Below, piece after piece: positions 573 to 50,177 of a stretch of 64,000 nucleotides of DNA. The stretch's first letter is position 1. Every line of letters starts with the position of its first letter. The stretch lies in sequence record LR756501.1. One strand, 5' to 3'. The translations under genes and the position numbers were made by a program. The notes beneath the pieces are model-generated. The model worked only from the letters and a program-made list of their open reading frames with translations. It had not been told where the DNA came from and ran no database searches.

Positions 573-1463
573 ATGATAACTAAATTTAAAATATTTGAGG
601 CTATATCGCTAGACTATCCACTACCTTTATTTAAGGTTGGGGATACTGTTTATTATCACGGAAGACTTAGAAAACATCATGGTTATTATAAAGTAAAAGA
701 ACGTTATCATTCTAGTTTATTTCAACAATCTGAATTAGAAAAAGGTGATACTGGATGGAGATATGATTTAAGTGAAGATGGTGTTCATATATTTATCAGA
801 GGTTCTTGGGAAATGTCGTCTTCACCAACAGAAGAGGAAGGTAAAAGAAAAGATAAAGAATATCAAGATAAAAAAGAAGAATTAAGAAAACTTCATATGG
901 ATTTTGATCCTTACGGTGAAGAGGTTTGGGAATCAATCAGACAGGATGATCCTTACGGTGAAGAAATTTGGGAAAATGAAGAAGTATTTAAAATAGGTGA
1001 TAAAGTTATATGTATGAACACTGAAAACGCCATTGGTGTAACATTACATAAAAAATATATTGTGTCTAATCCTAATCCACAGATATTTAATAATAATTGT
1101 GTAGAAATAATAAATGATTTTGATAAAAAAGGAATTTATATTAACAGTAGATTTAGAAAAGTTTTAAATGAAAATGTGAATATTTTAGATCCTTACGGTG
1201 AAGAAGATTGGGAAGATAAAAACAAAGCATCTGAATTTGATATATTTGATGATGACGACAGAGAAGAAAATCTTTATCATAGAGTGGGTGAATGTAGATT
1301 ATGTGGTAGATACGCTCCTCACGGATTGATGTTAGACGACGTTTGTCCAGCTTGTAGGTTCGAAGATGATCATTGCTATATGTGTGGAAGTTACGTACCA
1401 CACGAATTTCTACACGACGGTGCTTGCGATTTATGTTTAAAGGATCCAACATGGAATATGTAA
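573..1463 (+). CDS. Modular protein: CTS-like leader, two SH3/KOW-like segments, three DPYGEE tags, Cys-rich C-terminus
   Basis: ATG at 573 gives MITKFKIFE; FKVGDTVYY and FKIGDKVIC segments; four CxxC pairs at C-terminus. Confidence 0.8.
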   Translation: MITKFKIFEAISLDYPLPLFKVGDTVYYHGRLRKHHGYYKVKERYHSSLFQQSELEKGDTGWRYDLSEDGVHIFIRGSWEMSSSPTEEEGKRKDKEYQDKKEELRKLHMDFDPYGEEVWESIRQDDPYGEEIWENEEVFKIGDKVICMNTENAIGVTLHKKYIVSNPNPQIFNNNCVEIINDFDKKGIYINSRFRKVLNENVNILDPYGEEDWEDKNKASEFDIFDDDDREENLYHRVGECRLCGRYAPHGLMLDDVCPACRFEDDHCYMCGSYVPHEFLHDGACDLCLKDPTWNM

Positions 1464-1494
1464 AAAATAATTTTTTAATTTAATATATAGCGGT

Positions 1495-1830
1495 ATGTTA
1501 AAAAAATTCGATAAATTCGCAAATGAGAAACTGAACTCCGAACTTGACCCTTATGGTGAAGAAAGGGATGAAGACGACGTGTTTGAGGAATTTGATATTA
1601 ATGATGACTTATCGGTTGAAGATGTATGGGTTGAAACCACTTATACATACAATGTGAAATTAGGTAAATATAAATTGAAATATAAATTAGTATATGACGA
1701 TGATGGTTTTTCTTCGTTAGATAGAGTAGAAGAAAATGACGAAAAATTACCAGAACATGTTTTAGATTTCTGTGAAGAATATGACGAAGAAATAAAAGAA
1801 ATATTAGTGGCTGAGAGATATGGTAGATAA
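1495..1830 (+). CDS. Acidic hypothetical protein, CTS-like leader + DPYGEE
   Basis: MLKKFDKFANE...ELDPYGEE; TATATA motif upstream. Confidence 0.8.
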   Translation: MLKKFDKFANEKLNSELDPYGEERDEDDVFEEFDINDDLSVEDVWVETTYTYNVKLGKYKLKYKLVYDDDGFSSLDRVEENDEKLPEHVLDFCEEYDEEIKEILVAERYGR

Positions 1831-2197
1831 TTATAAAAAGTTTATAAAAGAAAACGACGAACATAAAGACGTTGATCCTTACGGTGAAGAAAACTGGAAG
1901 GAAAAACCTTATTTAGATTTTGATAAAGATAAAATGGTAAGTGATTGTCTTGATATGATTTATCAAGATATGAGTGGATATAGAGATTGGATAATGCAAG
2001 TTATAAATAACTATTTCAACGACCAATCTATTGATTATTTAAAAGAGTTCTTAAACTACGAATACGACGAACCCTGTGAAGGATGTGACGGAACAGGAAT
2101 AATACACGATGAAGTCACCGGCGCTGAGGTTGAATGTGGTGAATGTAACGGAGAAGGGGAAGTTGATATATATGAATACAAATATGGCAAAAAATAA
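1820..2197 (+). CDS. Hypothetical protein, CTS-like leader + DPYGEE + DnaJ-type zinc finger
   Basis: MVDNYKKFIKE; CEGCDGTG and CGECNGEG. Confidence 0.8.
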   Translation: MVDNYKKFIKENDEHKDVDPYGEENWKEKPYLDFDKDKMVSDCLDMIYQDMSGYRDWIMQVINNYFNDQSIDYLKEFLNYEYDEPCEGCDGTGIIHDEVTGAEVECGECNGEGEVDIYEYKYGKK

Positions 2198-2206
2198 ACG
2201 AATAAC

Positions 2207-3835
2207 ATGAAAAAAATGGAATTAAAAAATTTAACAGAATTTGAGCAATTTAGATTATTGATGAAGGAAAGTGTTTCAGGAACAGTGCGTTGCAGATTTG
2301 CCCCTTCACCTACCGGAGGCCTTCATATTGGGGGTGTTCGTACTGCTCTATATAATTATCTTTTCGCTAAGAAACATAACGGAGTATTTTACATTAGAAT
2401 TGAAGATACCGATCAAGGTAGATTCGTTTCAGGTGCAGAATCCTATATCCTTAAAGCTTTAGATTGGTGTGGTATTCATCACGAGGAAGGACCAGATGTT
2501 GGTGGACCTTACGCTCCTTACAGACAATCTGAAAGAAGTAATATCTATCCTAAATACGCTAAAGAGCTTATTGATAAAGGACACGCTTATTACTGTTTCG
2601 ATACACCAGATGATATTGAGAACATGAAAGCTAAATTGATCGAAAAAGGTGTACAATCACCTCAGTACGATCATATAACAAGAATGACCATGAAGAACTC
2701 GCTTACTCTAAAACCAGAGGAAGTAGAAGATTTAATGGCTAAAAAAGTTCCATTTGTAATTAGAGCAAAGTTCCCACCAGACGAGATTATAGTAGTCCAC
2801 GATATCATCAGAGGTAACGTTGAAGCTAACACGAATACTCTTGATGATAAAGTTCTATTCAAATCAGATGGTCTTCCAACATACCATTTAGCTAATATAG
2901 TTGACGACCATTTGATGAAAACAACTCACGTTATTCGTGGTGAAGAGTGGCTCCCAAGTGCTCCACTTCACGTATTTTTATACAAATCTTTAGGTTGGGA
3001 ACCACCTGAATTCGCTCACTTAGCCCTCCTACTTAACCCGGGCGGTCAAGGTAAACTATCGAAAAGAATGGGTGACGAATTAGGTTTCCCTATTTTCCCA
3101 TTAGCTTGGACTGATCCAAAGACTGGAAAAGAATCATTAGGTTATAAAGAAAAAGGTTATATACCTCAAGCTTTCATAAACTTCTTGGCTTTCTTAGGTT
3201 GGAATCCTGGCACAGAACAAGAAATGATGACTATGGACGAACTCATCCAATCATTCTCATTAGAGAGATGTGGTAAAGCTGGAGCCAAGTTTAATATTGA
3301 AAAAGCCAAATGGTATAACGGACAATATATGAAACAAATGTCTGACGAAGAAGTTACTGAACTTTTAAAACCTATTTTGAAAGAAAGAGGAATTGATCTT
3401 CCAGATAGAACCATAAAGAAAATGGTTGAAATGAATAAAGGTAAAGCTAACTTTATATCTGATATTTATGAGGCTTCACTATATTTATTTGAGCCACCAA
3501 AGGTCTATGACGAGAAAACAGTTGCTAAGAAATGGAATGATAAATGTCCTGCTCTTATGGCTCAAATAAAAGAAGCTTTGGCTCCTGTTCAAGATTGGAC
3601 ATCCGAAAGTATTCAAAAAGCATTTGAGGCTTATGTTAATCAAAATGGTTTGAATTTTGGTGAAATTTCAGCACCTTTAAGACTTGTTTTAACAGGTATG
3701 GGATTTGGACCTAATCTTTTTGATATTATGGAAATTATTGGTAAAGAAGGAACACTGGATCGTCTTACCAACTTCAAAATTAAAGCCAAGAAAAAGTTTG
3801 CACCTATGGTGTTACCTATTCCTGGAGCTGAATAA
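2207..3835 (+). CDS. gltX: Glutamyl-tRNA synthetase (class Ib) with short N-terminal extension
   Basis: RFAPSPTGGLHIGG (HIGH), RIEDTD, HVIRGEEW, KLSKR (KMSKS); resembles Bacteroidota GltX. Confidence 0.97.
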   Translation: MKKMELKNLTEFEQFRLLMKESVSGTVRCRFAPSPTGGLHIGGVRTALYNYLFAKKHNGVFYIRIEDTDQGRFVSGAESYILKALDWCGIHHEEGPDVGGPYAPYRQSERSNIYPKYAKELIDKGHAYYCFDTPDDIENMKAKLIEKGVQSPQYDHITRMTMKNSLTLKPEEVEDLMAKKVPFVIRAKFPPDEIIVVHDIIRGNVEANTNTLDDKVLFKSDGLPTYHLANIVDDHLMKTTHVIRGEEWLPSAPLHVFLYKSLGWEPPEFAHLALLLNPGGQGKLSKRMGDELGFPIFPLAWTDPKTGKESLGYKEKGYIPQAFINFLAFLGWNPGTEQEMMTMDELIQSFSLERCGKAGAKFNIEKAKWYNGQYMKQMSDEEVTELLKPILKERGIDLPDRTIKKMVEMNKGKANFISDIYEASLYLFEPPKVYDEKTVAKKWNDKCPALMAQIKEALAPVQDWTSESIQKAFEAYVNQNGLNFGEISAPLRLVLTGMGFGPNLFDIMEIIGKEGTLDRLTNFKIKAKKKFAPMVLPIPGAE

Positions 3836-3849
3836 AATAATATACGAAA

Positions 3850-5310: not shown

Positions 5311-5883
5311 ATGGAAAAATTCACAAACGTTAAGAAGAACGAACCTAAAACAGAAGCCAACGAAGATCTCTTCAAGAACGACGAAATATCAATTATAAAG
5401 TTTGACGAGAAAGATATTATTATTAGTAACGCTCAAATAGTCATTCTACCTTATTTTAAAGACGAAGGCTTCTTCCTTCTTAAATACGAAAAATGTCCAG
5501 CCTTTAAATTCAAATATAAAGATAAATCAGAATATAACACACAAGACTACTATCTCACAAGTATTAAATCTGACTTTAATGACGATCAAACACCTACACA
5601 GAATGTTAGACGTATTCTACATGAAAAGACTGGAGTTGTTTTAAATCAACTATTTCCAATTGAAGTAGATAAAGTACTTTTCAAAGAAGATAATAACGTA
5701 GGACAATATCATATTTGTATATTACCAATAAACTATAACGATTATAAACAATCAAGTGTACAAGTAACAGAAGAAAATAGAGTTGTTAAGATTAGTCTTG
5801 GTGATATAGATAGTGTAAAAATATATGATTTGATTACAGATTACCTATTATTAAAGTTGAAATTTGAAAATAATATGAAATAA
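5311..5883 (+). CDS. Nudix-fold-like protein with degenerate Nudix box
   Basis: VILPY...DQTPTQNVRRILHEKTG resembles an eroded GX5EX7REUXEEXG. Confidence 0.45.
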   Translation: MEKFTNVKKNEPKTEANEDLFKNDEISIIKFDEKDIIISNAQIVILPYFKDEGFFLLKYEKCPAFKFKYKDKSEYNTQDYYLTSIKSDFNDDQTPTQNVRRILHEKTGVVLNQLFPIEVDKVLFKEDNNVGQYHICILPINYNDYKQSSVQVTEENRVVKISLGDIDSVKIYDLITDYLLLKLKFENNMK

Positions 5884-6341
5884 TGGATAAGTATAACAAT
5901 TTTATAAATGAAGCAGTTAACGAAGACGAATTTGCCGTAAAAAGATTAACCAATCTTGTAGATATGGCTATACCTTTATTTCATGAGGCAAGTCTAATAT
6001 ACCCAGCAATTAAAAAATATAAGAGGACAACAAAACTCACAACTGAACTAGGTGAGTCTTTAGTAAAAACATTTCCAAAACCAAAACCAAAAGCTGGCGA
6101 TTTAATACCTGGAAACATGTATGTTTACTCACCAGACGTTGATACAAAAATAGAATACACAAATGCTTATAATAAACAAAATGTTAGATTAATTGAAATT
6201 AGTACTCCAAGAAATTTTGAATATTGTGATTCAAAATATATAAAATGTTGTAATCATTTAGTAGAAGTAAAAGTAATGTACGGTGGACCAAGAAGATTCT
6301 GGACCAGGAAACATTGCCTTAAAACAATGAAAGCATATTAA
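5883..6341 (+). CDS. Hypothetical protein, CTS-like leader
   Basis: MDKYNNFINE. Confidence 0.75.
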   Translation: MDKYNNFINEAVNEDEFAVKRLTNLVDMAIPLFHEASLIYPAIKKYKRTTKLTTELGESLVKTFPKPKPKAGDLIPGNMYVYSPDVDTKIEYTNAYNKQNVRLIEISTPRNFEYCDSKYIKCCNHLVEVKVMYGGPRRFWTRKHCLKTMKAY

Positions 6342-6342: not shown

Positions 6343-6531
6343 ATGGCAGAACAAGTAGATAGATACGAAGAAATCGTAAATGTTTTAATCCCTATACTGG
6401 ATGAAATGAATCATCTTAAAAAATATATGGACACTAAGACATTTAACGGAATAACAGACAAATTGAAAAAGTATATACAACAACCATCCAATCCACCACC
6501 AACAATTGGTACAGCAAAAATGTTTATGTGA
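6343..6531 (+). CDS. Small hypothetical protein
   Basis: 62-aa ORF tightly packed between neighbours. Confidence 0.6.
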   Translation: MAEQVDRYEEIVNVLIPILDEMNHLKKYMDTKTFNGITDKLKKYIQQPSNPPPTIGTAKMFM

Positions 6532-7169
6532 TGATAAAGAAATATATACAATTCATTAACGAAGCGTCCTCAGATATGTGGGACGACCTATATAAAAAAA
6601 TAGGTACAGATAAATATACTGAAAGTGTACCAGACCTATTAAATATAAATAGAATATCTGTTACTAAATCGGGCAAAGTGCTCGACGTTGGCGTCGGCGA
6701 CGGCTCTAATTCTAAATATTTTCTACAAAAAGGTTTTGATGTTTACGGTATAGACGTATCTAAAGTAGCCCTACAAAGAATGACCAACTATACCCAAAAA
6801 GGTCACTGGATCGAACACGACGTTACTAAAAAATTACCATTTGAAAATAAATTTTTCGATGTTATATTTTCAAGATTATCAATACATTACTTTGATGACG
6901 AACAAACTTCTGAAATTATAAAAGAATTTAGACGTGTAATTAAAGATGACGGTTTACTATTTATTTCAGTTAAAGTTGCTAATGTTGGTAATATTAATAC
7001 AGGTAAAGTCATGAGAACTAAAGATCAATGGGAAGAGATAATATCAGAATATTTTGGAATGATAGAAATGAATGAAGTTGTTAGAAAACCCTATGATTAC
7101 GATCCTGCTCCTTCTAATATGTTAGAGATATACGCTAAACCAGAACTTCGCCAGAAAATCCAACGTTAA
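6528..7169 (+). CDS. Class I SAM-dependent methyltransferase with CTS-like leader
   Basis: VLDVGVGDG motif I, GIDVS, FDVIFSRLSIHYF; MMIKKYIQFINE. Confidence 0.88.
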   Translation: MMIKKYIQFINEASSDMWDDLYKKIGTDKYTESVPDLLNINRISVTKSGKVLDVGVGDGSNSKYFLQKGFDVYGIDVSKVALQRMTNYTQKGHWIEHDVTKKLPFENKFFDVIFSRLSIHYFDDEQTSEIIKEFRRVIKDDGLLFISVKVANVGNINTGKVMRTKDQWEEIISEYFGMIEMNEVVRKPYDYDPAPSNMLEIYAKPELRQKIQR

Positions 7170-21078: not shown

Positions 21079-21161
21079 TTATCTTTTTATAAATTTATAT
21101 CAATGAAGTTTAAATTTTAGAAAAATTTATTTTATATATAGTAAAAAATGATAATACGTTA

Positions 21162-22376
21162 ATGATTAGCAACTACGATAATTTCATGAACGAAAGCCTA
21201 AAGAAAGAATTTACTAAGCTTCTTCATAACATCACCAAACACTTTGGCAACGAAGATAATATGGAAAAACTTGAAGCTGATCTTATTAGATTACTCAACG
21301 GTTACAAGAATAATATATTGTCTGGTCAAATCAGAAAAATAGATAATAATTTCATAGAAGGTATTAAACACGAAGTTAATAAAGACGTTGTTGAATTACT
21401 TAACATTGATACATTTTTTAGAGGTATAAACAACCTTAAAGTTAAAGGCAAAGACAAGAAAATAGAAGAATATTTTAACGATTATATCGCTTCTATTCCT
21501 AATAGATTAAAGACATTATATAATTCAGAGCAAGATGTTAAACTTGACGATCCACACGACGTAGATACAGAAGATATGTATTACGATCCTTATCTTGACG
21601 ATAACGAATTTTCAGAATGGCGTAAAGTTGTTTCTACAGCACCAAGATTCAGAGTTAAAAGAAGAAGATTTGAAATAGAAAAGGCCTCTTTACATATCGA
21701 ATTACTTAAAATGAGAGATTGGTTAGCTGAGAACGACAAGAAATTAGTGATAGTTCTAGAAGGTAGAGACGCTGCAGGTAAAGGTTCTTTCATTAGAACA
21801 GCAACAGAAAATCTAGCACCAGCTTATTATAAAATAAATACATTTGGTGTTCCAACACAAGAAGAGAAAGAACATTGGTTTGAAAGATACGAAAAGGTTT
21901 TACCTACAACACAACAGATCGCTTTTTACGATAGAAGTTGGTACAATAGAGCTGTAGTTGAACCAGTTATGGGTTATTGTACAACAGATCAATATTCAGA
22001 ATTTATGAGAGACGTTGTGCCATTTGAAGAAAGTTTAATTGATAGTGGTATTTATCTTATCAAATTATGGTTCTCTATTACTGATAAAACACAAGAATTA
22101 AGATTTAAATTAAGACAAACAAGCCCTATTAAATATTGGAAGTTCTCACCAAATGACGCCAAGGCAATGGAAAAATGGGACGCCTATACCGCTTATAAAG
22201 AAGAAATGTTTAGAACAACATCGACTGAAAAATCTCCTTGGGTTATAGTAGATTCAAATGATAAGAGAGTGGCAAAACTTAACGCTATGAGATATATCTT
22301 AAATCAAATTCCTTACGATAATAAGAAAGAAGAGATATTAGAAGTATATCCCGAAGTTGTATATCCTATTATATAA
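21162..22376 (+). CDS. ppk2: Polyphosphate kinase 2 with ~170-aa N-terminal extension
   Basis: LEGRDAAGKG, YDRSWYNRAVVEPVMG; starts MISNYDNFMNE. Confidence 0.95.
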   Translation: MISNYDNFMNESLKKEFTKLLHNITKHFGNEDNMEKLEADLIRLLNGYKNNILSGQIRKIDNNFIEGIKHEVNKDVVELLNIDTFFRGINNLKVKGKDKKIEEYFNDYIASIPNRLKTLYNSEQDVKLDDPHDVDTEDMYYDPYLDDNEFSEWRKVVSTAPRFRVKRRRFEIEKASLHIELLKMRDWLAENDKKLVIVLEGRDAAGKGSFIRTATENLAPAYYKINTFGVPTQEEKEHWFERYEKVLPTTQQIAFYDRSWYNRAVVEPVMGYCTTDQYSEFMRDVVPFEESLIDSGIYLIKLWFSITDKTQELRFKLRQTSPIKYWKFSPNDAKAMEKWDAYTAYKEEMFRTTSTEKSPWVIVDSNDKRVAKLNAMRYILNQIPYDNKKEEILEVYPEVVYPII

Positions 22377-28069: not shown

Positions 28070-28929
28070 AATTCTTCTAATATTGTTCTTGCGGATTCAA
28101 TTGCTTCATCGTATTCGTATGAAACACCATCTGGTCCTTCAGCACCGTCAACTCCGTTTATTTCAAAATCAAACCAATTATTATCAGTCATCCACATACA
28201 ATCGGCTAAATCTTGATCTGTCCATCCTAGTTCAGTTGCTTTTACTACTGCGTCTCTATTATAATAATATTTGCCATTTTCTTCGAATCTTATTCTAATA
28301 TCACCAGTTGGATAAACTGTTACCCAATTCTCACCTTTTTTTAGTTCGGCTATTGCTTCGCCGTAATACCAAAAGGCGTCTTGTTTATTATCTGCTATTT
28401 TATCGTGAAGATAAATCACTTCAATTTCGTACTGTTTATCTTCCCAATTTTCTTCACCGTACGGATCTAATTCACTATTATCAGCGTTTTCTCTTACATC
28501 AGCCCACACGTTGATTTCTCTTTTTCTACCTTTTTCTGTTCCAGTCATATTCATTCCTCTCCTTTTATAAAATTCATTTGATTTAATATTATCTTGTGTA
28601 GTCTTCAATCTTCTTGGTTTTGGTACCATTTCAAATAATGCTTTACCTATACCCATTGATTGAAAATCTTTTCTTACTCCTATTTCATGTATAGTATTCC
28701 AACCATCTCTTCTCTCGTGAAAATGAACAAAACCAATAACCACACCATCAGATTCAGCTACCATAAGTTCGTCATATTTCATAGCATCTATAAGAGCCAC
28801 GTTCATAACAAAACCAAGTTCGTCTCTGAGTTGATTAGTTATCTTTTTAATATCTTTAAGGTCAGACTCTTTACCTAATCTATAAGATATATTATTAAAT
28901 TGTTCGTACAGTCTGAACTCTGTTATCAT
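28066..28929 (-). CDS. GNAT acetyltransferase domain + DPYGEE + unknown domain
   Basis: MITEFRLYE; IGVRKDFQSMGIGKALF acetyl-CoA motif. Confidence 0.8.
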   Translation of the reverse strand: MITEFRLYEQFNNISYRLGKESDLKDIKKITNQLRDELGFVMNVALIDAMKYDELMVAESDGVVIGFVHFHERRDGWNTIHEIGVRKDFQSMGIGKALFEMVPKPRRLKTTQDNIKSNEFYKRRGMNMTGTEKGRKREINVWADVRENADNSELDPYGEENWEDKQYEIEVIYLHDKIADNKQDAFWYYGEAIAELKKGENWVTVYPTGDIRIRFEENGKYYYNRDAVVKATELGWTDQDLADCMWMTDNNWFDFEINGVDGAEGPDGVSYEYDEAIESARTILEEL

Positions 28930-29756
28930 ACTTTCTTAATTTTTTCTAAATCGTTTTCTATTTTACCACATAAATCACATTGTAAAAAATATTTCATTAC
29001 TCTTTCAAAATTTTCAGGATTACGCATTACTCTACTTCTCAAAGACCATTTATGTTCACATTCTTTTATTTTAACTTTTTCTGCTGGTTCTAATTTACCG
29101 TTCCTAAACCATCTTGTTCCTTCTGATAATCTACCTTTACTGTACCATCTTATTTTTACCAACTTATTAACTTCAAGTGGTGTTATCTCCTCGGGTGATA
29201 CGTTATAACAATATCCGTCTTTACCATTCCCGTTACAATCGTGACCGTCGTCAAACGTTTTATCAAATTGCACACCAATTTCTTGACCACCGCTTCTTAC
29301 CCTTATAACAGTACCCTCAAATCCTTCTATTTCTCTATTGGCTCCGTGATAACCGTTATTAACGTAGTGATATATAACTCTTTGACCCAATTCAAAATTA
29401 TCGTTTTTTCCTTCGTTTAATAATTTTCCTTTTTTGTACCATCTTATTTTAGGAGGAGTTTTATCTTCTAATTCAACAAAATTGCTAGTTAAATAATAAG
29501 AAGATCTTGTTGGATCTTCATTATTATCACCAGCCATCAAATTAGTATTGAATCTATTATCAAATTTAATGAGTATTTCTCTCTTTTGTGATTTATCCCC
29601 AGCCTCGTAAAAATTTATAATATTTCCAACTTCCCCTTTAAAAGTAATATCATTATATTTACCAGTAACAATTACTCTATCCCCAGCACTGAAATTACCA
29701 TCTGGATCGTAATCTGTATATTGATTGGACTCGAATATTTTAAACTTTCTTATCAT
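28926..29756 (-). CDS. Tandem SH3-like protein with three RW[YF]xxG[KR]L motifs
   Basis: MIRKFKIFE; FSAGDRVIV, FELGQRVIY. Confidence 0.75.
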   Translation of the reverse strand: MIRKFKIFESNQYTDYDPDGNFSAGDRVIVTGKYNDITFKGEVGNIINFYEAGDKSQKREILIKFDNRFNTNLMAGDNNEDPTRSSYYLTSNFVELEDKTPPKIRWYKKGKLLNEGKNDNFELGQRVIYHYVNNGYHGANREIEGFEGTVIRVRSGGQEIGVQFDKTFDDGHDCNGNGKDGYCYNVSPEEITPLEVNKLVKIRWYSKGRLSEGTRWFRNGKLEPAEKVKIKECEHKWSLRSRVMRNPENFERVMKYFLQCDLCGKIENDLEKIKKV

Positions 29757-29793
29757 CTTTTCTATATATAAAAATAAAAAAGAGATAGTTTGA

Positions 29794-30822: not shown

Positions 30823-30841
30823 TATTTTTATATATAGGTTT

Positions 30842-32428
30842 ATGTCTATAATATCAAAATATTCTGATTTCTTAAATGAAACTTTAAAATCTTACGAGAT
30901 AGAAGTAGTAGTTAAAAAATTAGCTAATTTCTTTGATAATCTTGGGTTCACTAGAAAATATAATTTCACAGAAACAAAGTCGCCTTATTACCAATTAGTC
31001 ACGGATAGGGAGTATATGAAACGTGAACTCCTTAAATATAAAACAGGAGAAGGGGCTGGTGATATAGAATTAAAGTACATTAAGAAATTACCAAAGGATA
31101 AAAGAGAATTAATGGTTAATTCATATGAGAGAGCTCTAGAAGAATTTAAATATGGTGATATAACTATTTTTACTGATAAAAATTCACCAGAGATAACGGA
31201 TTCATTATTACATTTAATAAACACATCTGGTTATTTTGTATCTACTATAATGAAAACAGGATTGAAAATTGATAAAAAAGACATAAGGAATCATCTTATA
31301 AATCAAGATAGAATATCAATTATGATAGAACCAAATTTTGATTCTAAAGTGGATTTCAAAGGGGAATATCTTTATCATTCAACTGAAAAACAATATTTAG
31401 AAAAAATATTAAAAATTGGACTGGCCCCAAAATCAAAAAACACAAGAAGTTTCTATCCCGAGAGAATATATTTATCTCCAAATATTGAATATTTAAAAGC
31501 TATAAAGGATCAATTATCAATAGATAAATTTGGTGACTATGTAGATTTAAAGATTAAAAATTTTTCAGGTCTAGAACTCTATAAAGATGTTAGATATAAA
31601 GGAGGATTCTTTACTTATAATAATATACATCCTAAATATATTGAAGTCATTAATAGTGCCAATGAATCTGTTTTTTTAAATGAAAGTGATAGGGGTATGG
31701 AAATATATCTAAGAATGAAGAAAGCCTTCGAATCATTTGATATTGGAGATAGAGTTGTTTATAAAGGCAGAGGATTACAACTAAAAGATAGAGTTGGAGA
31801 AGAATGTGAAATTATAGATAAATCTCGTTCTCACACTCAAGTTAAAGTTAGATTTGATGATAATTTTAAAACATGGATAGATGCTATAGCTCTAAAGAAG
31901 GTAACACATAAAGCCAAAGTTAAGTGGTATTCTAAGGGTAAATTAGAAGAAGAAGGATGGGAAAATGAATCAAAAGATTTTACTGGAATGCCTGTTATAT
32001 CAAAAACTGATAAGTATATGAATCTATCTTACGAATTAGAACCTTTAAAGGATTTAGAAGAGATGGCTAGTAATCTTACCGCTGAACAATATGCTGGATA
32101 TATTTTCGAAAATGTGAACAGAGTATTTGAACATTTAATACACAGAAGAGTGGTACTAGTTGCCAAAAAATGTAAAGATGTGTCTAAATCTTTTGTAGAT
32201 CCAGATAGATGGGATCAAGAAAAGAAACATTCCATATATATTTATTCTTATTTACCACGACCAGATGGAGGTTTAATAATAAGAGGTGATGATATGGGAG
32301 GCGATATTTATTCAGTTGATTTAGTGAAATGTGCAAACGACCCTGAAAAATATCCAATATTATTAAGAAATGTTAGAATATTCTCAAATGACGATTCCTA
32401 CGGTGAAGAAGAGTGGAGTGACGAATAA
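30842..32428 (+). CDS. Modular protein: CTS-like leader, ART/Tpt1-like domain, SH3-like domain, terminal DSYGEEEW
   Basis: MSIISKYSDFLNE; YLYHSTE..GLAPKS..RIYLS; FDIGDRVVY. Confidence 0.7.
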   Translation: MSIISKYSDFLNETLKSYEIEVVVKKLANFFDNLGFTRKYNFTETKSPYYQLVTDREYMKRELLKYKTGEGAGDIELKYIKKLPKDKRELMVNSYERALEEFKYGDITIFTDKNSPEITDSLLHLINTSGYFVSTIMKTGLKIDKKDIRNHLINQDRISIMIEPNFDSKVDFKGEYLYHSTEKQYLEKILKIGLAPKSKNTRSFYPERIYLSPNIEYLKAIKDQLSIDKFGDYVDLKIKNFSGLELYKDVRYKGGFFTYNNIHPKYIEVINSANESVFLNESDRGMEIYLRMKKAFESFDIGDRVVYKGRGLQLKDRVGEECEIIDKSRSHTQVKVRFDDNFKTWIDAIALKKVTHKAKVKWYSKGKLEEEGWENESKDFTGMPVISKTDKYMNLSYELEPLKDLEEMASNLTAEQYAGYIFENVNRVFEHLIHRRVVLVAKKCKDVSKSFVDPDRWDQEKKHSIYIYSYLPRPDGGLIIRGDDMGGDIYSVDLVKCANDPEKYPILLRNVRIFSNDDSYGEEEWSDE

Positions 32429-32477: not shown

Positions 32478-33149
32478 ATGGACATTTTAAGAAAATATAG
32501 ACACTTTATAAATGAAGCTGTCGATTCAGATAAAGAGATCAAAACATTGAACGATGTCCCAGGTGAAGTCATTGAATCAGCTAAAAAAATAGCTGGTGAT
32601 ATGTTTGATAGAGTTAGAAAACCTGTATTCGAATTATCACCCGAAGGACTGATTATGAAATTTCAAGTTACTCAACAAGATTTCAATTATATAGATGAGA
32701 ACGAAACTCTTAAATTAGATATGACCGAAGGAGCTAGAAAGAAAAGAACTTATGATGTTACACTTTCTTATTTAGATAGAATATCAGAAACATTTGAGGT
32801 TACTTATTTAGTCAATTTTGAAATTTTTGAATTCGTTCCAGAAGACGACGAAGACGAAATTGTGGACGACGATATTGAAGACGAAATTGAATACGACGAC
32901 GTTGACGACGCTGTAATGACTAAATATCAAGAATTACTCGCTAAATGGAAAAAAGAACAAATCAAAAACAACGCCAATACCAATCCAGGTGAAGGAACAA
33001 GAAGAAGATTAATGGATCAAGCAAAGAAAGAACTTGGTGAAGACGAAGAATATTTCGATGAAGACGTTGCAGATCAAAACATTAAAAAAGGTAAAATTAA
33101 AATTCAGGACGTGGATCTAGAAGAAGATATAGATGACGAAGATGAATAA
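32478..33149 (+). CDS. Acidic protein, CTS-like leader
   Basis: MDILRKYRHFINE; D/E-rich C-terminal half. Confidence 0.75.
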   Translation: MDILRKYRHFINEAVDSDKEIKTLNDVPGEVIESAKKIAGDMFDRVRKPVFELSPEGLIMKFQVTQQDFNYIDENETLKLDMTEGARKKRTYDVTLSYLDRISETFEVTYLVNFEIFEFVPEDDEDEIVDDDIEDEIEYDDVDDAVMTKYQELLAKWKKEQIKNNANTNPGEGTRRRLMDQAKKELGEDEEYFDEDVADQNIKKGKIKIQDVDLEEDIDDEDE

Positions 33150-33169: not shown

Positions 33170-33631
33170 ATGAAGAAATTTAATAATTTGATGACGTATG
33201 AATCATACAATATGGTAAATGAAGGGATTAAAGTTCCTGAACTTAGTCAACAAATGAAAGCAGATATCGACGCTTTTGTAGCTAAAAACAAAGCTTGGTT
33301 ACAAAAGGTTCTGATTAACTTTAAAGGTAAGTCGGCACAAGAAATAACAACTATGTTGGCCACACCTAGCGCTCCAACTTCACCTGTAACAGAAGGTGTT
33401 ATAACTGATAAACTAAAAGAGGTTGGCAATAAAATTAAATCAAATATTGGTAACTGGTTAACAAGTTTATCAACAGGTGTATCTGTGGCTTCATTTGGTA
33501 CAATGTTATTTGGATTATTCCAATTAGCCCAATCTGGTGCAGTAACTAACTTTCTATCAGGTGGTGCACTCGCGTTATTAGCTTCTGTTGTTATATACGC
33601 AGTGGGTAAAGTTTTCGGTGGACAAAATTAA
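33170..33631 (+). CDS. Protein with xNE leader and two C-terminal transmembrane helices
   Basis: MKKFNNL..MVNE; VNE/ITE motifs; hydrophobic hairpin. Confidence 0.75.
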   Translation: MKKFNNLMTYESYNMVNEGIKVPELSQQMKADIDAFVAKNKAWLQKVLINFKGKSAQEITTMLATPSAPTSPVTEGVITDKLKEVGNKIKSNIGNWLTSLSTGVSVASFGTMLFGLFQLAQSGAVTNFLSGGALALLASVVIYAVGKVFGGQN

Positions 33632-33698: not shown

Positions 33699-33896
33699 TC
33701 AAGATGTTGCTTTGATAAATCCTAATCCTCTAGTGAGTTCGTAAGAAACAGGCCAAAAGACTAACATAAATATAATATAATCCATTCTATTTACATAGAT
33801 GGTTGTAGCAATCAGAAATACTATTAAAAAAAATCCAAGTGAATAACAAAGAAACGTGATAAACTCGGCCATGGTGAATTTTCTGAATGTTTTCAT
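33699..33896 (-). CDS. Small membrane protein
   Basis: Two hydrophobic stretches; TAnnTTTG promoter upstream. Confidence 0.65.
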   Translation of the reverse strand: MKTFRKFTMAEFITFLCYSLGFFLIVFLIATTIYVNRMDYIIFMLVFWPVSYELTRGLGFIKATS

Positions 33897-33964: not shown

Positions 33965-34309
33965 TTAATGATAAAATTTAAACCTCACTGGATCACCAAC
34001 TTCGACAAATTTTAAAACTAATCTTTTATCGTCTTCGTGGCAAACGAGATCTCTGAAATATGGGAGCTTTTCAAATAAAAATTTCTTAATCTTGGTAATG
34101 TTTTTTTCACTATCATCTGATTTTTGGAAATATTCGAATGATATACTATTTTGATTATTATATATGAACCAACAACTCATATCGAAGTCTTTCAAAGCTT
34201 CTATGATTACATCTATATCTATGTGAATATCGTTAAGAACAAATCTATAAAATTCTTTCTTCTTAACCTCTTCTAATAAAAATTCATTATAATTCTTGTA
34301 CGCCGTCAT
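33965..34309 (-). CDS. Hypothetical protein, CTS-like leader
   Basis: MTAYKNYNEFLLE. Confidence 0.72.
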   Translation of the reverse strand: MTAYKNYNEFLLEEVKKKEFYRFVLNDIHIDIDVIIEALKDFDMSCWFIYNNQNSISFEYFQKSDDSEKNITKIKKFLFEKLPYFRDLVCHEDDKRLVLKFVEVGDPVRFKFYH

Positions 34310-35015
34310 TAGATTGCTTTGGTTTTATTTTAACATAAAATGTTACTTTATCATCATCTTCACTATCAATGTAATAAAAGACTTTATTAAACCATTTGAA
34401 TTTTTCACACCATTTTTCGTACCTGTGAAGTAAACCGTTCACGTTTTCTAAGTCTTCTTTACAATCTTCTTTACTAATAGATTTTTTTACTATTGTTTCA
34501 TTTAAAATTAATATATCCCCTTTACCTTCAAACCAAGTTTTTAAATGACTTTTAATTTCTTGTAACATATTAAGATTCACCAAATTAGAATTTTTTAATA
34601 TGCCTTCTATAAGAGCTATACATTTATAAGATTTAAGACTTCTAACGTATTTTGTATCTACTTTGAATAATCCAGTTTTATAAATTTCTCTGGTCATATC
34701 ATTTTGGAGACCGTATTCTAAATTATTACTCTTTATACCAAAATAAAAAGATAATCTATTGTCTTTTATTTGATTAGCTGTTTCACATGTGGTTTTAAGG
34801 GACATTGAATCGCTGAAATATCCAAGGAGATCTTCTTTATTTTTTATATGATCAGTTGTGAAGAAGTACTGATATTTACCAGTGTTAAGATAATGACTTG
34901 TCTTTATAAAATGCATCTTCATATCATCAAGTAGTTTAAGGAACATAAAGAACCCGTGCTTTCCATCTAATCTAGGACCTTCATTTTCTTTTATGTATTC
35001 GTAGTAACTTCTCAT
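34287..35015 (-). CDS. Hypothetical protein, CTS-like leader
   Basis: MRSYYEYIKE. Confidence 0.72.
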   Translation of the reverse strand: MRSYYEYIKENEGPRLDGKHGFFMFLKLLDDMKMHFIKTSHYLNTGKYQYFFTTDHIKNKEDLLGYFSDSMSLKTTCETANQIKDNRLSFYFGIKSNNLEYGLQNDMTREIYKTGLFKVDTKYVRSLKSYKCIALIEGILKNSNLVNLNMLQEIKSHLKTWFEGKGDILILNETIVKKSISKEDCKEDLENVNGLLHRYEKWCEKFKWFNKVFYYIDSEDDDKVTFYVKIKPKQSNDGVQEL

Positions 35016-35644
35016 TAATTCATATATTTTTTATAAAAGTGCTTAAACGCACTATCAAATTGTTCTCTTGATATTTTATGATATGTATCAGGTAATATTA
35101 ATATTTCACCACCTTTTTCTTCAAAATTAATCTTCTTTAAATCTTCTATTGTTAAAGCACCATCTACTCCAAAATCGGCTTTAGTGTCTTTATCACCAAT
35201 TATAATCAACTGTTTTGGAAATAAAGGTAGATTTTTCATATCATCTGGTAAAGGTTGAAGCGTTGGAGCTTCACTTGTAGCACACATTGCTGGATTAATC
35301 CCCATAGACGGAATCTTATATTTGTTAGCCAAATAAAATGAAGCGTAACCACCAGCAGAATTACCTACAATTGCTTCAACGTTGTGACTTTCAATTATTT
35401 CCCTCATATCTTCAAATATAATTTCGCCTGCTCTCCAATAAACACTACCAGTTATAACGTGATGACCAAATTGTGATAATATATTAGATGTATCTTGATT
35501 TCTCCTATATATATTTAAAGATAAATCGTCTTTTAACCACCCTCTAGAACCGTTGATAAATAATATACATGGTTTATCCCCAGGATCTTTTAGTTGGGTA
35601 TGAATCTCGTTTATAAAAGAATTAAATTTTTTCATCTTAGGCAT
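35015..35644 (-). CDS. Alpha/beta hydrolase (YqiA-like esterase), CTS-like leader
   Basis: GNSAGG nucleophile elbow; MKKFNSFINE. Confidence 0.78.
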   Translation of the reverse strand: MPKMKKFNSFINEIHTQLKDPGDKPCILFINGSRGWLKDDLSLNIYRRNQDTSNILSQFGHHVITGSVYWRAGEIIFEDMREIIESHNVEAIVGNSAGGYASFYLANKYKIPSMGINPAMCATSEAPTLQPLPDDMKNLPLFPKQLIIIGDKDTKADFGVDGALTIEDLKKINFEEKGGEILILPDTYHKISREQFDSAFKHFYKKYMN

Positions 35645-35704: not shown

Positions 35705-36283
35705 ATGAGCCAAATATTAAGATTCAATGATTTTGTGAAAGAGGCTAACGCTTCTTACGCAGGTGATTGGCCACTAAATAAACAACAGATTGGAATGGAC
35801 GACGGTGATGTTGCTAATAATCAAGAATACGCCAAGAAAGAGAATAAGTTTCAAGAGGTACAAGAACATATGAAAGCAATATTAAAACCTATTCTTTTAA
35901 AGAAAAATCCAAACGCCAACGATAGTGATATAGAAAAAGTATCTGATTCATTTTTCAATTTAGGTGATAACAAGGCTCAAGAAGTCAGGAAAATGGTTGA
36001 TAATTGTAAAGACGCAAAACAATGTGCTCAGGATATAGTTAATAGATATTTGAGATACGTTAAGATTAATTTCAATTCAAAAGATAACGTAAATGACGTA
36101 GAACAAGATTCTGTAATGGCATCAGAAGGAATGGATAGTAATATGGCTGGCGTATGTGAAGAATGTGATGGTAAAGGATATACCGATAAAGGTAGATGTA
36201 AAGCTTGTAACGGCACTGGTTTAACACCAGGGGTTAAAAAGAAAAGGAGATCAACAAAATCATTTAAACAATACAATGGATAA
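35705..36283 (+). CDS. Hypothetical protein, CTS-like leader, C-terminal DnaJ-type zinc finger
   Basis: ATG at 35705 gives MSQILRFNDFVKE; CEECDGKG, CKACNGTG. Confidence 0.75.
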   Translation: MSQILRFNDFVKEANASYAGDWPLNKQQIGMDDGDVANNQEYAKKENKFQEVQEHMKAILKPILLKKNPNANDSDIEKVSDSFFNLGDNKAQEVRKMVDNCKDAKQCAQDIVNRYLRYVKINFNSKDNVNDVEQDSVMASEGMDSNMAGVCEECDGKGYTDKGRCKACNGTGLTPGVKKKRRSTKSFKQYNG

Positions 36284-36555: not shown

Positions 36556-37314
36556 ATGGAAAATTTAAGGAATTACGATAATTTTTTATCTGGATTAAAT
36601 TTCGCTAAAATTAAATCAGATAAGAATACCACTTTGTTTCTAGAAGGCATGATGACCGAGAAAGAGTGGAAAGAATACTGCAATGATTCACTAAACGAGA
36701 GTTGGTGGGACGATATGAAAAATTGGTTTAGTGAAAAAATTATATCTAAACTTAAATCAATATACGAAGCAGTAATGAATGGTGTAGCGGGTGCTTATTT
36801 GAAAATAAAAGCTATCATAGATACTATTGTAAATGGAATTTCAGGATTTAAACAAAAACACCCTATTCTATTTAAAGTTATAGTTACTTTTATAGTTGCA
36901 GCCTTGGTTATTATATTTTTTATAATAACGTCTAATAGTGCAAAAGCAGGTGAACCAGCTAAAAATTCAACAATGATGTGGGAATACGCAAACGGTATAA
37001 TAAATAACTATTCTAACGATCCAAGTTCGACTGTTGATAAGAATTTATTAATGCACGCACAAGCTTATTGTATGGATATGAAAGACGGTATTCTTGGTAA
37101 CGAAGGTATTGATTGGGCAAAAGAGAAATTACCAGAAATAGAAAAAATTGTAAATATCGCTACTAAAAACTTTGATACTTTAAGTCAAGAGGCTATGAAG
37201 GGCGATAAAAACGCTGGATCATTTATTATTAAAATGTGTGAACAAGGTAAAGAATTTATCTCATTTATACACGAACATATTGGTGGCAGAGAAAGAATCG
37301 CTTTAGGAAAATAA
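36556..37314 (+). CDS. Protein with central transmembrane segment, CTS-like leader
   Basis: MENLRNYDNFL; SLNE; VIVTFIVAALVIIFFII. Confidence 0.72.
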   Translation: MENLRNYDNFLSGLNFAKIKSDKNTTLFLEGMMTEKEWKEYCNDSLNESWWDDMKNWFSEKIISKLKSIYEAVMNGVAGAYLKIKAIIDTIVNGISGFKQKHPILFKVIVTFIVAALVIIFFIITSNSAKAGEPAKNSTMMWEYANGIINNYSNDPSSTVDKNLLMHAQAYCMDMKDGILGNEGIDWAKEKLPEIEKIVNIATKNFDTLSQEAMKGDKNAGSFIIKMCEQGKEFISFIHEHIGGRERIALGK

Positions 37315-44860: not shown

Positions 44861-45145
44861 TTATCTGCGTTGATTTACGAGAAATTCTATACTGTAAATT
44901 TCTTCTCCTCTTTCTTCACAATCTAAACAATAATATTCGTAGTGCATTTCATCAGCAAAAATATCTTGGTCCCCCCAATCTATATTTTCACTACCACAAT
45001 TTGCACAGACTCCTTGTCTGTCGCTATATTTGTTTGGATTATCACTCCAGTTCTCTTCACCGTAAGGATCTATCTTGCTTCTATCCACTGGTTCTGGTCC
45101 TTGCTCAGGAGTATCTAATTGTTCGTTAAATTTTTTTATTTTCAT
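44861..45145 (-). CDS. Zinc-ribbon protein, xNE leader + DPYGEENW
   Basis: MKIKKFNE; CANC, CLDC. Confidence 0.75.
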   Translation of the reverse strand: MKIKKFNEQLDTPEQGPEPVDRSKIDPYGEENWSDNPNKYSDRQGVCANCGSENIDWGDQDIFADEMHYEYYCLDCEERGEEIYSIEFLVNQRR

Positions 45146-45146: not shown

Positions 45147-45497
45147 TTAATAATTTGGTTTTAATTCTTCCGCTAAATCTGTATAAGCGTCAACGAATTC
45201 TCTTTCAGTTAATTCCCTTAAAACCTTAATCATATGGTTAGGAACGCCAAATCTTATAGTCATTGTGGTCACATTTTTCCTGAGATCATCAATAATATAA
45301 TAATATAAAATTCCTCTATGTGGATAATCAATAGTAAAAATGAATTCTTTTATGTATTGACTATGTACCTTAATTTCAGTAGGATTTAAATTGAGATTTA
45401 CTGCTATTTCCCTTATAATTTCTATATTATCTCTATCGTCCCATCTTTCTTCACCGTACGGGTCAAATTTATTGAAATTATCAAATTTTTTAATCAT
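45147..45497 (-). CDS. Hypothetical protein, CTS-like leader + DPYGEERW
   Basis: MIKKFDNFNKFDPYGEERW. Confidence 0.75.
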   Translation of the reverse strand: MIKKFDNFNKFDPYGEERWDDRDNIEIIREIAVNLNLNPTEIKVHSQYIKEFIFTIDYPHRGILYYYIIDDLRKNVTTMTIRFGVPNHMIKVLRELTEREFVDAYTDLAEELKPNY

Positions 45498-48597: not shown

Positions 48598-48638
48598 TAA
48601 AAAAAAAACCGAACTATTGGTGTATAGTTCGGTTATTT
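48598..48638 (-). terminator. Intrinsic terminator
   Basis: aaccgaacta..tagttcggtt hairpin with A tract on +. Confidence 0.75.
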
Positions 48639-48680
48639 AAAAAGAAAGGGACGCATTAGAGGGACACCACCATATTTTTA

Positions 48681-48854: not shown

Positions 48855-48869
48855 GGTACCTATTTTTTA

Positions 48870-49349
48870 TTAATCTTCAGCTCTTTCCTTGAGTGCATTG
48901 TAGATAGCTGTAGCTTCACCCTTTGCAATTGGAATAGTTACTTCGATTTCTTCACGTGTTTTGGTACGTTTCTTCTCTTCTTTCTTACGTCCACCTTCAT
49001 CTGTGTAAGTTTTTCTGAAAGAATTAGCTTTAGTTCTCCAAAGAGTTAACGATCCTTCGTTCTTGTTGATTTTATGTTTACGTCCACGAATAGTGAAAGT
49101 AACACTTGAATCGGTCACACTAATATCTTTTATTTGATTTTCGTTAACAGACTTCATAATTTGTTGAATGAACTTTGTGCAATTTTCTTTCCAACCTGCA
49201 GCTGTTTGATCCATAACCTTCATGTAAAGGTTTTCGTTAACTACATCAAGACCAACTTCTGTTCTCTTGGTAGATTTTTGTTCTTTTGCCTTCCAACCCG
49301 ATTTATCAAAATCGTCAAAACTTAAAAGGTTTTCTAACTTGTTTCCCAT
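48870..49349 (-). CDS. Basic hypothetical protein
   Basis: 159-aa ORF after a TATATA motif; VVNE site. Confidence 0.72.
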   Translation of the reverse strand: MGNKLENLLSFDDFDKSGWKAKEQKSTKRTEVGLDVVNENLYMKVMDQTAAGWKENCTKFIQQIMKSVNENQIKDISVTDSSVTFTIRGRKHKINKNEGSLTLWRTKANSFRKTYTDEGGRKKEEKKRTKTREEIEVTIPIAKGEATAIYNALKERAED

Positions 49350-49399
49350 ATCTTTAATTGTTATTTTTTTAGTATATATTAATATTTTTTTCCCATTTT

Positions 49400-49597
49400 T
49401 TATTTGCTTGGGTAAAAGAATCTATCGTTGACGAAATTAAATATTCTTTCTTGAACGTCATCGTCTAAATCACCAAATTCGTTTTCTATTTGACGATTTA
49501 AGTCCTCTTGTTCTTCTTCCGAGAATTGAAATGGACCACCTTTTTTATCCACAACTTCTTCCTCACTCATATATTCTAACAACTTTTTAACTTTCAT
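49400..49597 (-). CDS. Small acidic protein
   Basis: MKVKKLLE; TATATA motif upstream. Confidence 0.65.
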   Translation of the reverse strand: MKVKKLLEYMSEEEVVDKKGGPFQFSEEEQEDLNRQIENEFGDLDDDVQERIFNFVNDRFFYPSK

Positions 49598-49643
49598 AAC
49601 GATAAATTATTTTTTCGTATATATTATTTATAAAAATCCGTTT

Positions 49644-50177
49644 TTATTCAGATAAAACATAAAGATCTTCATCAGGTGGCATCGGACAATCTGTAATCCA
49701 CTTAGTACTCCTTACGTCCCAATCCCCCATATCACCAAATTTTTTCACACTAAATACCTTGAGTCTCATATCTTTACCTGGGAATTTCATCTTATCGTAA
49801 CCGTTATCATAAAATAACATTCTATCAAGGGCTGCGTGTAAAGTGAGAGTAACACCATCTAAATGTTTCAAAACTTCTAAAAATTTCTTCTTTGGGTGTG
49901 GCCAAGCGGTATAAAGAAATATCTTTTTATTTCCGTTGCTTCTTAAAATATCTATAACTTGTATTAATCTATCTGGATATAACATTGGTTCACCCCCTGT
50001 TACAAAGACTTCTTCGTAACCCTTTATTTCTTCTACTTTGGCAAGTATGTGGTCGAAATCCATTATTTGATTGCAACAACCTTTACATTTTCTATTACAT
50101 TTAAAGCTCATTACAACTCTTGCAAATCGCTTTTGTGTTTTGTTCTCAAATAGGAATTCGTTAAATTTTGTTTTCAT
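49644..50177 (-). CDS. Radical SAM protein with CTS-like leader
   Basis: ATG at 50177 gives MKTKFNEFLFE; CNRKCKGC, VTGGEP. Confidence 0.85.
   Translation of the reverse strand: MKTKFNEFLFENKTQKRFARVVMSFKCNRKCKGCCNQIMDFDHILAKVEEIKGYEEVFVTGGEPMLYPDRLIQVIDILRSNGNKKIFLYTAWPHPKKKFLEVLKHLDGVTLTLHAALDRMLFYDNGYDKMKFPGKDMRLKVFSVKKFGDMGDWDVRSTKWITDCPMPPDEDLYVLSE

Follow-up and report, generated by a model that had tools for sequence, protein, structure and literature searches.

The 64,000-nucleotide stretch of DNA considered here (hereafter, the window) matches bases 131,061-195,060 of LR756501.1 at 100% identity, LR756503.1 being identical. LR756501.1 is the 735,411-bp genome of an 'uncultured phage' described by Al-Shayeb et al. 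(2020), the largest member of the Mahaphage clade, with a predicted Bacteroidota host (PMC7162821). About 10-12% of its proteome was found to carry a short N-terminal leader peptide with two spaced aromatic residues and a terminal glutamate. These leaders are probably capsid targeting sequences (CTS) of the T4 type, i.e. propeptides of 9-13 residues that would dock proteins on the core of the assembling head and be removed by gp21-type cleavage, in a system expanded about 30-fold. Capsid targeting with cleavage is, as a prediction from sequence, well supported in silico, and we infer that the tagged proteins would bind the core, be cleaved, packaged and finally injected.

The public record of LR756501.1 carries no annotation, and open reading frames (ORFs) were called on the whole genome by a longest-ORF, non-overlap rule, which gave 1,061 ORFs covering 95% of the sequence. 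Leaders were recognised with a strict pattern, M-x(1-5)-[FY]-x-x-[FY]-x(0-2)-E (as an expression, M.{1,5}[FY]..[FY].{0,2}E), and with a looser position-weight profile built from this genome's own leaders and scored in bits. The strict pattern was present at the start of 94 of the 1,061 ORFs, and 116 leaders were obtained once alternative Met starts within 40 residues were counted. Shuffling residues 2-16 of every ORF left 15.8 +/- 3.9 strict matches, the reversed motif gave 17, and internal Met positions matched at a rate of 1.3%. The enrichment was confined to an aromatic spacing of two residues (94 matches), whereas spacings of 0, 1, 3, 4 and 5 yielded 9-21 matches each. With the profile, 120 ORFs scored at least 10 bits against 5.7 expected; by chance, about 22 ORFs per genome would reach 6 bits or more and 0.3 per genome 16 bits or more.

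The genomes of two AT-rich relatives served as controls. Tenacibaculum phage PTm1 (30% GC) showed 2 strict matches vs 2.5 expected, and the Prevotella phage Lak-B1 (MK250020.1; 26% GC), translated with TAG read as Gln, showed 6 vs 4.4 expected, so that neither was enriched and AT-rich composition was ruled out as the cause of the leaders. Since both genomes are without enrichment, the expansion is specific to a subclade and not an effect of composition. Reading TAG as Gln in Lak-B1 raised coding coverage from 74% to 92%, and its protease match contains four in-frame TAG codons, consistent with the recoding for which Lak phages are known.

In the window, 17 ORFs matched the strict pattern, while 19 scored at least 10 bits and 23 at least 6 bits on the profile. 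The first-pass annotation had claimed 25-29 leaders for this stretch; every leader that it quoted was found at an ORF start, and its tally proved a mild over-count, including weak cases at 3850-4167, 4670-5185 and 48681-48854.

Genome-wide, 94 of the 116 leaders start at the first start codon of the ORF, and they are 7-13 amino acids (aa) long. Two consensus forms were distinguished, M-I-K-K-[FY]-x-x-F-[ILV]-[NK]-E with 67 members and M-I-K-K-F-K-[LI]-F-E with 29, both having I/L/V or an aromatic residue at P3 and Glu at P1 (counted back from the putative cut, marked below by a slash). The aromatic columns hold F or Y only. At P3, where the selecting pattern imposed no residue on 67 of the 116 leaders, 64% have I/L/V and 19% F/Y; P1', never fixed by the pattern, is A/S/G in 45% of leaders against a background of 17.5%.

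Compared by BLAST without their leaders, the 116 proteins form 96 mutually unrelated clusters, the largest family having 13 members. Paralogy was thus ruled out as the cause, and, because the clusters are unrelated, the leader is best described as a portable module rather than the conserved terminus of a single family. At F, Y, E and K, the leaders use synonymous codons as the genome does on average, which argues that selection acts on the peptide; Ile at position 2 is the only exception (ATA 72% vs 46%). Identical leader peptides differ at the nucleotide level, and a DNA-level element as the cause was ruled out since synonymous sites vary.

The T4 sequence MKTYQEFIAE was confirmed on ipII and ipIII in the T4 record. 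In T4, the 10 N-terminal residues of IPIII are enough for packaging, residues 4 and 7 determine targeting and residues 8 and 10 processing, an Asp at position 10 stops cleavage and not targeting, CTS-bearing proteins are delivered into the cell, and related T-even phages possess other proteins with CTS-like sequences (PMC9026906). The four functional positions of T4 coincide with the invariant columns of the Mahaphage leader, and the leader MDKYNNFINE/A (ORF at 5883) is in exact register with T4 MKTYQEFIAE/A. A profile trained on Mahaphage leaders only placed ipIII and ipII at the top of 278 T4 ORFs, with 18.1 bits. Short N-terminal position, spaced aromatics, processing residues, portability, and an encoded gp21-family protease with scaffold were all found, as in a T4-type CTS system. 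Our literature search retrieved no report of CTS-like leaders in Mahaphages. As a side observation, the 54-aa hypothetical protein gp61.1 of T4 (AF158101.6, 18,966-19,130) starts with MKTFKEFIKE and scored 17.4 bits, nearly the level of ipII and ipIII; judged by its sequence, it may be an unrecognised CTS-bearing protein.

The head module of LR756501.1 follows the T4 order, with a gp20-like portal gene at 71,969-73,795, a protease gene at 73,913-76,336 (phrog_207, E 5e-30) and a gene for a gp23-like capsid protein at 76,340-78,166 (phrog_138, E 3e-20). The gp21-like protease gene, for which the first-pass annotation had proposed a search, was therefore located between portal and capsid genes. 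Its GEFDHP and VSSRAAG segments align to GELNHP and VSSRGLG of T4 gp21, with the His and Ser columns conserved, which we take to be the catalytic residues; sequence membership, these two residues and the gene position agree in assigning it to the gp21 family. The N-terminus of the protease, MIKNVLIVE...KKINE/A, mirrors the LIE-9 site of T4, and the propeptide of the capsid protein ends ...M-N-E/N-V-G-Y-A, where T4 gp23 has ...L-T-E/A-E-I-G-G.

Joined to the protease in one ORF is a scaffold-like region that consists of 14-residue repeats, S-E-Y-I-A-E-N-L-D-K-x-I-x-Y, twelve of them in perfect register. This arrangement provides twelve putative Y-I-A-E cleavage sites, one per repeat and exactly 14 residues apart, and gives the ORF the highest [FY][ILVM]xE density of the proteome (18.6 vs 2.0 per 1,000 aa). 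Because the repeats each hold Y-I-A-E, the leaders end in the tetrapeptide of the phage's own scaffold repeats. The same protease-scaffold architecture occurs in the 635-kb genome LR745206.1 (198,546-200,669) and in the cultured phage PTm1, where it is annotated as 'prohead core scaffolding protein and protease'. Covariation of the scaffold repeat with leader flavour between LR756501.1 and LR745206.1 was looked for and not seen, the repeats being nearly identical. A second gp21-like ORF lies at 11,314-11,850 (-) of LR756501.1 (phrog_207, E 2e-19). It has His replaced by Tyr and Ser-Ser by Arg-Pro, and it ends ...LDPYGEENWSE-stop; to judge by these replacements, it is a putative inactive protease paralogue, as reported for SPN3US.

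The following sequence of events may be proposed. The two aromatics of the leader would dock the tagged protein onto the assembling head core, i.e. the scaffold half of the protease-scaffold fusion. Upon closure of the gp23-like shell, the gp21-family protease would cut after the leader Glu, and would also cut the scaffold at its periodic sites, the capsid protein at ...M-N-E/N and itself at ...I-V-E and ...I-N-E/A. The mature proteins would thus be freed inside the head, travel in the virion and probably leave it together with the DNA.

The leaders are retained among phage relatives and lacking in cellular homologues of two of the enzymes, GluRS and the polyphosphate kinase PPK2, in line with what the first-pass annotation had expected. 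About 50 metagenomic PPK2 orthologues (63-99% identity) keep Y-x-x-F-[LIMV]-N-E/S, while other leader residues and the distance from Met to Tyr vary, E11 being the sole invariant residue among the first 47; two-domain cellular PPK2 is without the leader. In the AF2 model of the phage PPK2, residues 1-8 have pLDDT <50, and the leader appears as a low-confidence free N-terminus before the helical N-domain. For GluRS, position 2 of the TIGR00464 profile aligns to residue 27 of the phage protein. All phage-type orthologues, about 50, keep an extension of 22-30 aa of the form ...LTEFEQFxxLMKE/SVSG or ...SFKEFKKLNE/SVSG, whereas GluRS of Cryomorphaceae and Bacteroidia have none and begin at M-x(2-6)-VRVRFAPSPTG.

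On the genome scale, LR745206.1, whose capsid protein is about 52% identical, encodes at least 63 strict leaders and a further 52 of a spacing-3 flavour, MK[YH][LI]Kx[FY]xxFE/S. In IMG/VR relatives (935 kb), strict leaders were found on 209 of 1,328 ORFs vs 22 expected.

The analysis also exposed a second protein tag, D-P-Y-G-E-E-x-W (DPYGEExW), with 106 copies in 91 ORFs genome-wide and 18 in the window. All copies share the DPYGEE residues, and 100 of the 106 have the W. They occupy the very C-terminus of a protein (...R-V-F-S-x-L-DPYGEENWxx-stop), follow an N-terminal leader within a few residues, or separate domains of long proteins, and they are commoner in leader proteins (33/116 vs 58/945; odds ratio 6.1, p 1e-11). 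Their synonymous sites vary, by which a DNA-level element was ruled out as the cause; a shared small domain was ruled out as well, 79 of 81 upstream segments being BLAST singletons. Since synonymous sites vary and the flanks are unrelated, DPYGEExW is taken as a linear motif acting at the protein level. It is frequent in the IMG/VR relatives and absent from LR745206.1 and T4, and no mention of DPYGEE in phages was found in the literature. Ideas for its role are a second docking tag for capsid or core, a protease site (G-E-E) or a modification site; speculatively, G-E-E would fit a site of the S/A/G-x-E type. The copies in the window lie on the plus strand at 62-85, 906-929, 948-971, 1188-1211, 1546-1569, 1874-1897, 3928-3951, 14795-14818, 15035-15058 and 17662-17685, and on the minus strand at 8132-8155, 25573-25596, 25798-25821, 26032-26055, 27202-27225, 28444-28467, 45047-45070 and 45441-45464. 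In LR745206.1, about 40 small, otherwise unrelated ORFs (for example at 1922, 20590, 45513 and 393414) were seen to end in ...[LI]-R-D-x-K-I-[DKN]-x-[IL]-L-(1-4 aa)-stop, and C-terminal tags that differ from lineage to lineage may be a general feature of the clade.

As regards the nature of the tagged proteins, the enzyme assignments of the first-pass annotation were clear for a methyltransferase, PPK2, a CCA enzyme, a GNAT protein and GluRS, and weak for an esterase and a radical SAM protein. The SAM-dependent methyltransferase (6531..7169, +; MIKKYIQFINE/A, 24.6 bits) reached E values down to 8e-16, with the domain starting from about residue 26. PPK2 (21162..22376, +; MISNYDNFMNE/S) has a 164-aa helical N-domain followed by a TIGR03707 match (E 4e-86, residues 165-391). 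A protein of 1,233 aa (23803..27504, -; GTG start, MITKFKLFE/Y, 18.7 bits), contains four internal DPYGEExW and, at its C-terminus, a CCA tRNA nucleotidyltransferase/HD domain (TIGR02692, E 1e-74, residues 788-1225). The GNAT acetyltransferase-like protein (28066..28929, -; MITEFRLYE/Q, 13.5 bits) has one DPYGEENW and matched the rimI model with E 7e-9. GluRS (2207..3835, +; 7.4 bits) carries an atypical leader, ...LTEFEQFRLLMKE/SVSG, in a 26-aa N-terminal extension. Weak similarities were found for the ORF at 35015..35635 (-; MKKFNSFINE/I, 22.8 bits) to an alpha/beta-hydrolase, esterase YqiA (E 2.5e-4), and for a small radical-SAM-like protein with CxxxCxxC at 49644..50177 (-; MKTKFNEFLFE/N, 20.3 bits; E 4e-5 to 5e-3).

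The other leader-bearing ORFs of the window are less informative as to function. On the plus strand these are 573..1463 (MITKFKIFE/A, 296 aa, three internal DPYGEExW, 20.5 bits, without NCBIfam or PHROG match), 1495..1830 (MLKKFDKFANE/K, DPYGEE 6 aa later, 16.3 bits), 1820..2197 (MVDNYKKFIKE/N, then DPYGEENW, 17.7 bits), 5883..6341 (MDKYNNFINE/A, 21.2 bits), 30842..32428 (MSIISKYSDFLNE/T, 528 aa, 19.2 bits), 32478..33149 (MDILRKYRHFINE/A, 223 aa, 20.8 bits) and 35705..36283 (MSQILRFNDFVKE/A, 192 aa, 19.3 bits). On the minus strand, they are 27494..28069 (MIKKFKLFE/L, 191 aa, 20.2 bits), 28926..29756 (MIRKFKIFE/S, 276 aa, family not recognised, 18.7 bits), 33965..34309 (MTAYKNYNEFLLE/E, 114 aa, 16.2 bits) and 34287..35015 (MRSYYEYIKE/N, 242 aa, 11.7 bits). 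Searches of NCBIfam, PHROGs and ESM Atlas returned no family for the leader ORFs at 573, 5883, 27494, 30842, 32478, 33965 and 34287. Weaker starts were MIKKFDNFNK, running straight into DPYGEERW (45147..45497, -; 10.9 bits), MKIKKFNE/Q with DPYGEENW 17 aa further (44861..45145, -; 8.4 bits), MKKFNNLMTYE/S (33170..33631, +; 7.0 bits), and MENLRNYDNFL, which has no terminal E (36556..37314, +; 6.9 bits).

The expectation of a large enzyme cargo was overstated, given that no family could be recognised for 19 of the 20 large leader proteins encoded outside the window. A RimK-type ligase was the one NCBIfam match among these 20, against matches for 5 of 10 random non-leader proteins. To judge from these searches, most tagged proteins are ORFans, as is usual for internal head proteins, and a minority are predicted enzymes (PPK2, CCA/HD, GluRS, methyltransferase, GNAT and RimK-like ligase). 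Among proteins with other assigned roles, 18 of 19 scored <2 bits on the leader profile; the untagged set includes portal, capsid protein, tail fibres, adaptor, ligase, EF-G, LeuRS and several metabolic enzymes. One copy each of the 116 leader proteins would total about 3.1 MDa, which is small beside the >40 MDa reported for the ejection proteins of SPN3US (PMC7411985).

A promoter-like element was associated with the leader genes. The 8-mer ATATATAG occurs no more than 100 nt upstream of 31 of 116 leader genes vs 53 of 728 others (p 1e-8), and within 60 nt of starts it takes one of two positions, 4 nt or about 18-24 nt ahead of the ATG. The distance is exactly 4 nt in 31 genes, about 27 of them, as counted by eye, having leader or leader-like starts; this arrangement implies, on sequence grounds, that the transcripts would be leaderless or near-leaderless. 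The same 8-mer precedes tail-fibre genes (in the 18-24 nt class) and the head-tail adaptor gene, and one-base variants precede the portal and protease genes. In the window it was located at 1483..1490 (+; 4 nt before the ATG at 1495), 21134..21141 (+; 20 nt before the PPK2 ATG), 29762..29769 (-; 5 nt before the start at 29756, heading a four-gene leader operon from 29756 to 23803), 30830..30837 (+; 4 nt before the ATG at 30842) and 45502-45509 (-; 4 nt upstream of ORF 45147..45497). LR745206.1 has a counterpart, AATATATA, before 48 of 110 leader genes vs 115 of 700 others (p 9e-10), and also upstream of its protease and capsid genes. We infer that ATATATAG may represent a late-type promoter.

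Several observations weigh against the interpretation of the leaders as capsid targeting sequences. Core binding and cleavage are proposed by analogy with T4. About 16 of the 94 strict matches correspond to chance expectation, and at least one of them, the DnaQ-like exonuclease at 348,683, is a false positive, the match overlapping its catalytic motif. The leader-like start MKTFRKFTMAE/F of a 66-aa ORF (33699..33896, -; 11.5 bits) runs into a hydrophobic, membrane-like stretch that is hard to square with capsid packaging; either chance or another use of the tag may account for it. The leader spacing of GluRS is non-canonical. GluRS, CCA enzyme and PPK2 are not usually virion components, and their tagging is either an interesting result or a sign of another purpose. 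Lastly, ATATATAG lies close upstream of about a quarter of leaders, often 4 nt from the ATG, and part of the 'MIKK' bias may reflect translation initiation on leaderless mRNA.

Among the alternatives, the one that survives best accepts the cleavage of the leaders and the packaging, and differs from injected cargo solely in the events after packaging. Here, the tagged proteins would mainly be parts of the head core, scaffold or inner body of a very large capsid, and the enzymes would be passengers or act in the head. The scarcity of family matches among large leader proteins fits this explanation, as do the 13-member leader-bearing paralogue family, with two of its genes (62,965 and 65,144) just upstream of the portal gene, and the resemblance of the leader to one scaffold repeat; the heads of SPN3US and phiKZ likewise contain >50 proteins, many of them structural (PMC5694885). 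We nevertheless regard it as unlikely in view of the clear enzymes with conserved leaders (PPK2, CCA/HD, GluRS, methyltransferase and GNAT) and of the entry of T4 CTS-bearing proteins into the cell.

A distinctly less likely explanation is that the leader addresses or regulates proteins for machinery other than the capsid, such as a phage chaperone, a degradation system or a compartment, its likeness to the T4 CTS being convergent. In that case the four-position match to T4 and the A/S/G preference after Glu would be coincidence. Against it also stand the [ILVM]-x-E sites, which recur in the propeptides of this phage's scaffold and capsid proteins, and the promoter-like element common to leader, head and tail genes. 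What speaks for it is the presence of the tag on enzymes that act in translation or on tRNA and should have their place in the cytoplasm, its co-occurrence with DPYGEExW, and the share of about 12% of ORFs, unusually large for virion-internal proteins.

We also considered whether the leaders arise from the way translation starts on AT-rich, often leaderless mRNAs, through a codon or RNA preference in the first 10 codons that has no function in the protein. The fixed 4-nt position of ATATATAG, the ATA bias of Ile at position 2 and the fact that K, N, I, F and Y belong to AT-rich codon families agree with this idea. Against these stand the average codon choice at F, Y, E and K, the enrichment at spacing 2 alone and its loss when the same residues are shuffled, the lack of the 4-nt arrangement in most leader genes, the two AT-rich controls, and orthologues in which the motif stays anchored to Glu while the Met distance varies; the idea is largely refuted and very improbable. 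Scarcely credible is common descent or repeated copying of a 5' cassette of promoter and first codons without current function, for which one may cite near-identical leaders on some neighbours (27494-29756; 474,651-476,339) sharing an abutting promoter motif and the T-even IP loci, which probably shuffle via conserved CTS and promoter sequence, since the 96 mature-protein clusters are unrelated, identical leaders already differ in nucleotides, and purifying selection holds the four key positions both in orthologues of as little as 63% identity and in the genome with a capsid protein only about 52% identical.

Returning to the capsid targeting sequences, a further step would be a two-part peptide 'address code' on >15% of the proteome, in which the leader and a short, nearly invariant and lineage-specific motif at C-termini or domain junctions would load the capsid with an injected, pre-made toolkit. 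We offer this only tentatively and consider it doubtful. The second part may be DPYGEExW in LR756501.1 and the IMG/VR relatives, or ...RDxKIxxIL in LR745206.1, and the toolkit (tRNA synthetase, CCA-repair enzyme, polyphosphate kinase, methyl- and acetyltransferases) may secure translation and nucleotide supply before phage gene expression.

Should the leaders function in the manner of the T4 CTS, a simple rule on sequence would tell which proteins are internal to the virion or ejected in the largest phages known, all of them uncultured. More than 100 different proteins, among them enzymes of translation, tRNA repair and nucleotide energy, would then be delivered with the DNA, and the view of how infection by a phage of 735 kb begins, and of how early defences of the host are evaded, would change. 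New sequence variants would furthermore become available for packaging by the T4 CTS, with leader-reporter fusions and the protease domain usable as reagents.

Some other features of the window should be recorded. Among the sequencing runs that hold it, only freshwater DNA runs and no RNA runs were found. The run of N at 8804-8824 is flanked by sequence that maps to the public record with one offset (131,060) on both sides. The gap accordingly measures 21 nt, a length divisible by three, and is collinear; it falls within ORF 8503-8844 (-), which has no leader. Between 38815 and 63784 there are 27 tRNA genes in minus-strand arrays (3 Glu, 4 Met, 3 Gln, 5 Ile including anticodon TAT, 3 Asp, 3 Asn, 5 Leu, Tyr and Cys), neighbouring EF-G (52020-54047), GluRS and the CCA enzyme. 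A LeuRS-like ORF (60892-62418, -) begins almost at the P-Y-P-S-G...H-M-G-H region, the normal N-terminal segment being absent, and is directly preceded by ORF 62415-63185 (-), the start of which resembles a GIY-YIG homing endonuclease. The LeuRS gene may be split or invaded, both assignments being made from the appearance of the sequences.

Short portable tags that load unrelated enzymes into a shell are known from the terminal cargo-loading peptides of encapsulins and the encapsulation peptides of microcompartments, and the encapsulin shell has an HK97-like fold as in phage capsids. These peptides are not cut by a maturation protease and their sequences are unrelated to the leaders, so that the likeness is functional only; the comparison may fit the C-terminal DPYGEExW tag more than the N-terminal leader. 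Closer are phiKZ and SPN3US, giant phages with dozens of head proteins and a gp21-related protease (gp175/gp245) cutting after Glu; SPN3US also shares a diverged, probably inactive protease paralogue. Their propeptides mostly exceed 100 residues without a common short leader, only gp45 of SPN3US having one of T4 length, and their cleavage motif is S/A/G-x-E, unlike [ILV]-x-E. Mahaphage leaders, in contrast, are 7-13 aa long with I/L/V/F at P3. In T4, the CTS of IPI, IPII, IPIII and Alt, removed by gp21, is likewise a short N-terminal propeptide with aromatics three apart, a hydrophobic P3, Glu at P1 and a small P1' residue, portable onto unrelated proteins, and the gp21-family protease, the scaffold and the gp23-family capsid gene are all encoded by the Mahaphage. 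The systems differ in scale (about 100-130 tagged ORFs vs 3-5 proteins in T4) and in cargo, with large enzymes of up to 1,233 aa and a tRNA synthetase in the Mahaphage vs small basic proteins and one ADP-ribosyltransferase in T4. The Mahaphage further has two consensus forms (...F-[ILV]-N-E and ...[IL]-F-E) with lineage-specific flavours in sister genomes, a protease fused to its scaffold and a predicted Bacteroidota host. The Mahaphage head module is closer to those of T4 and Tenacibaculum phage PTm1 than to those of phiKZ and SPN3US.

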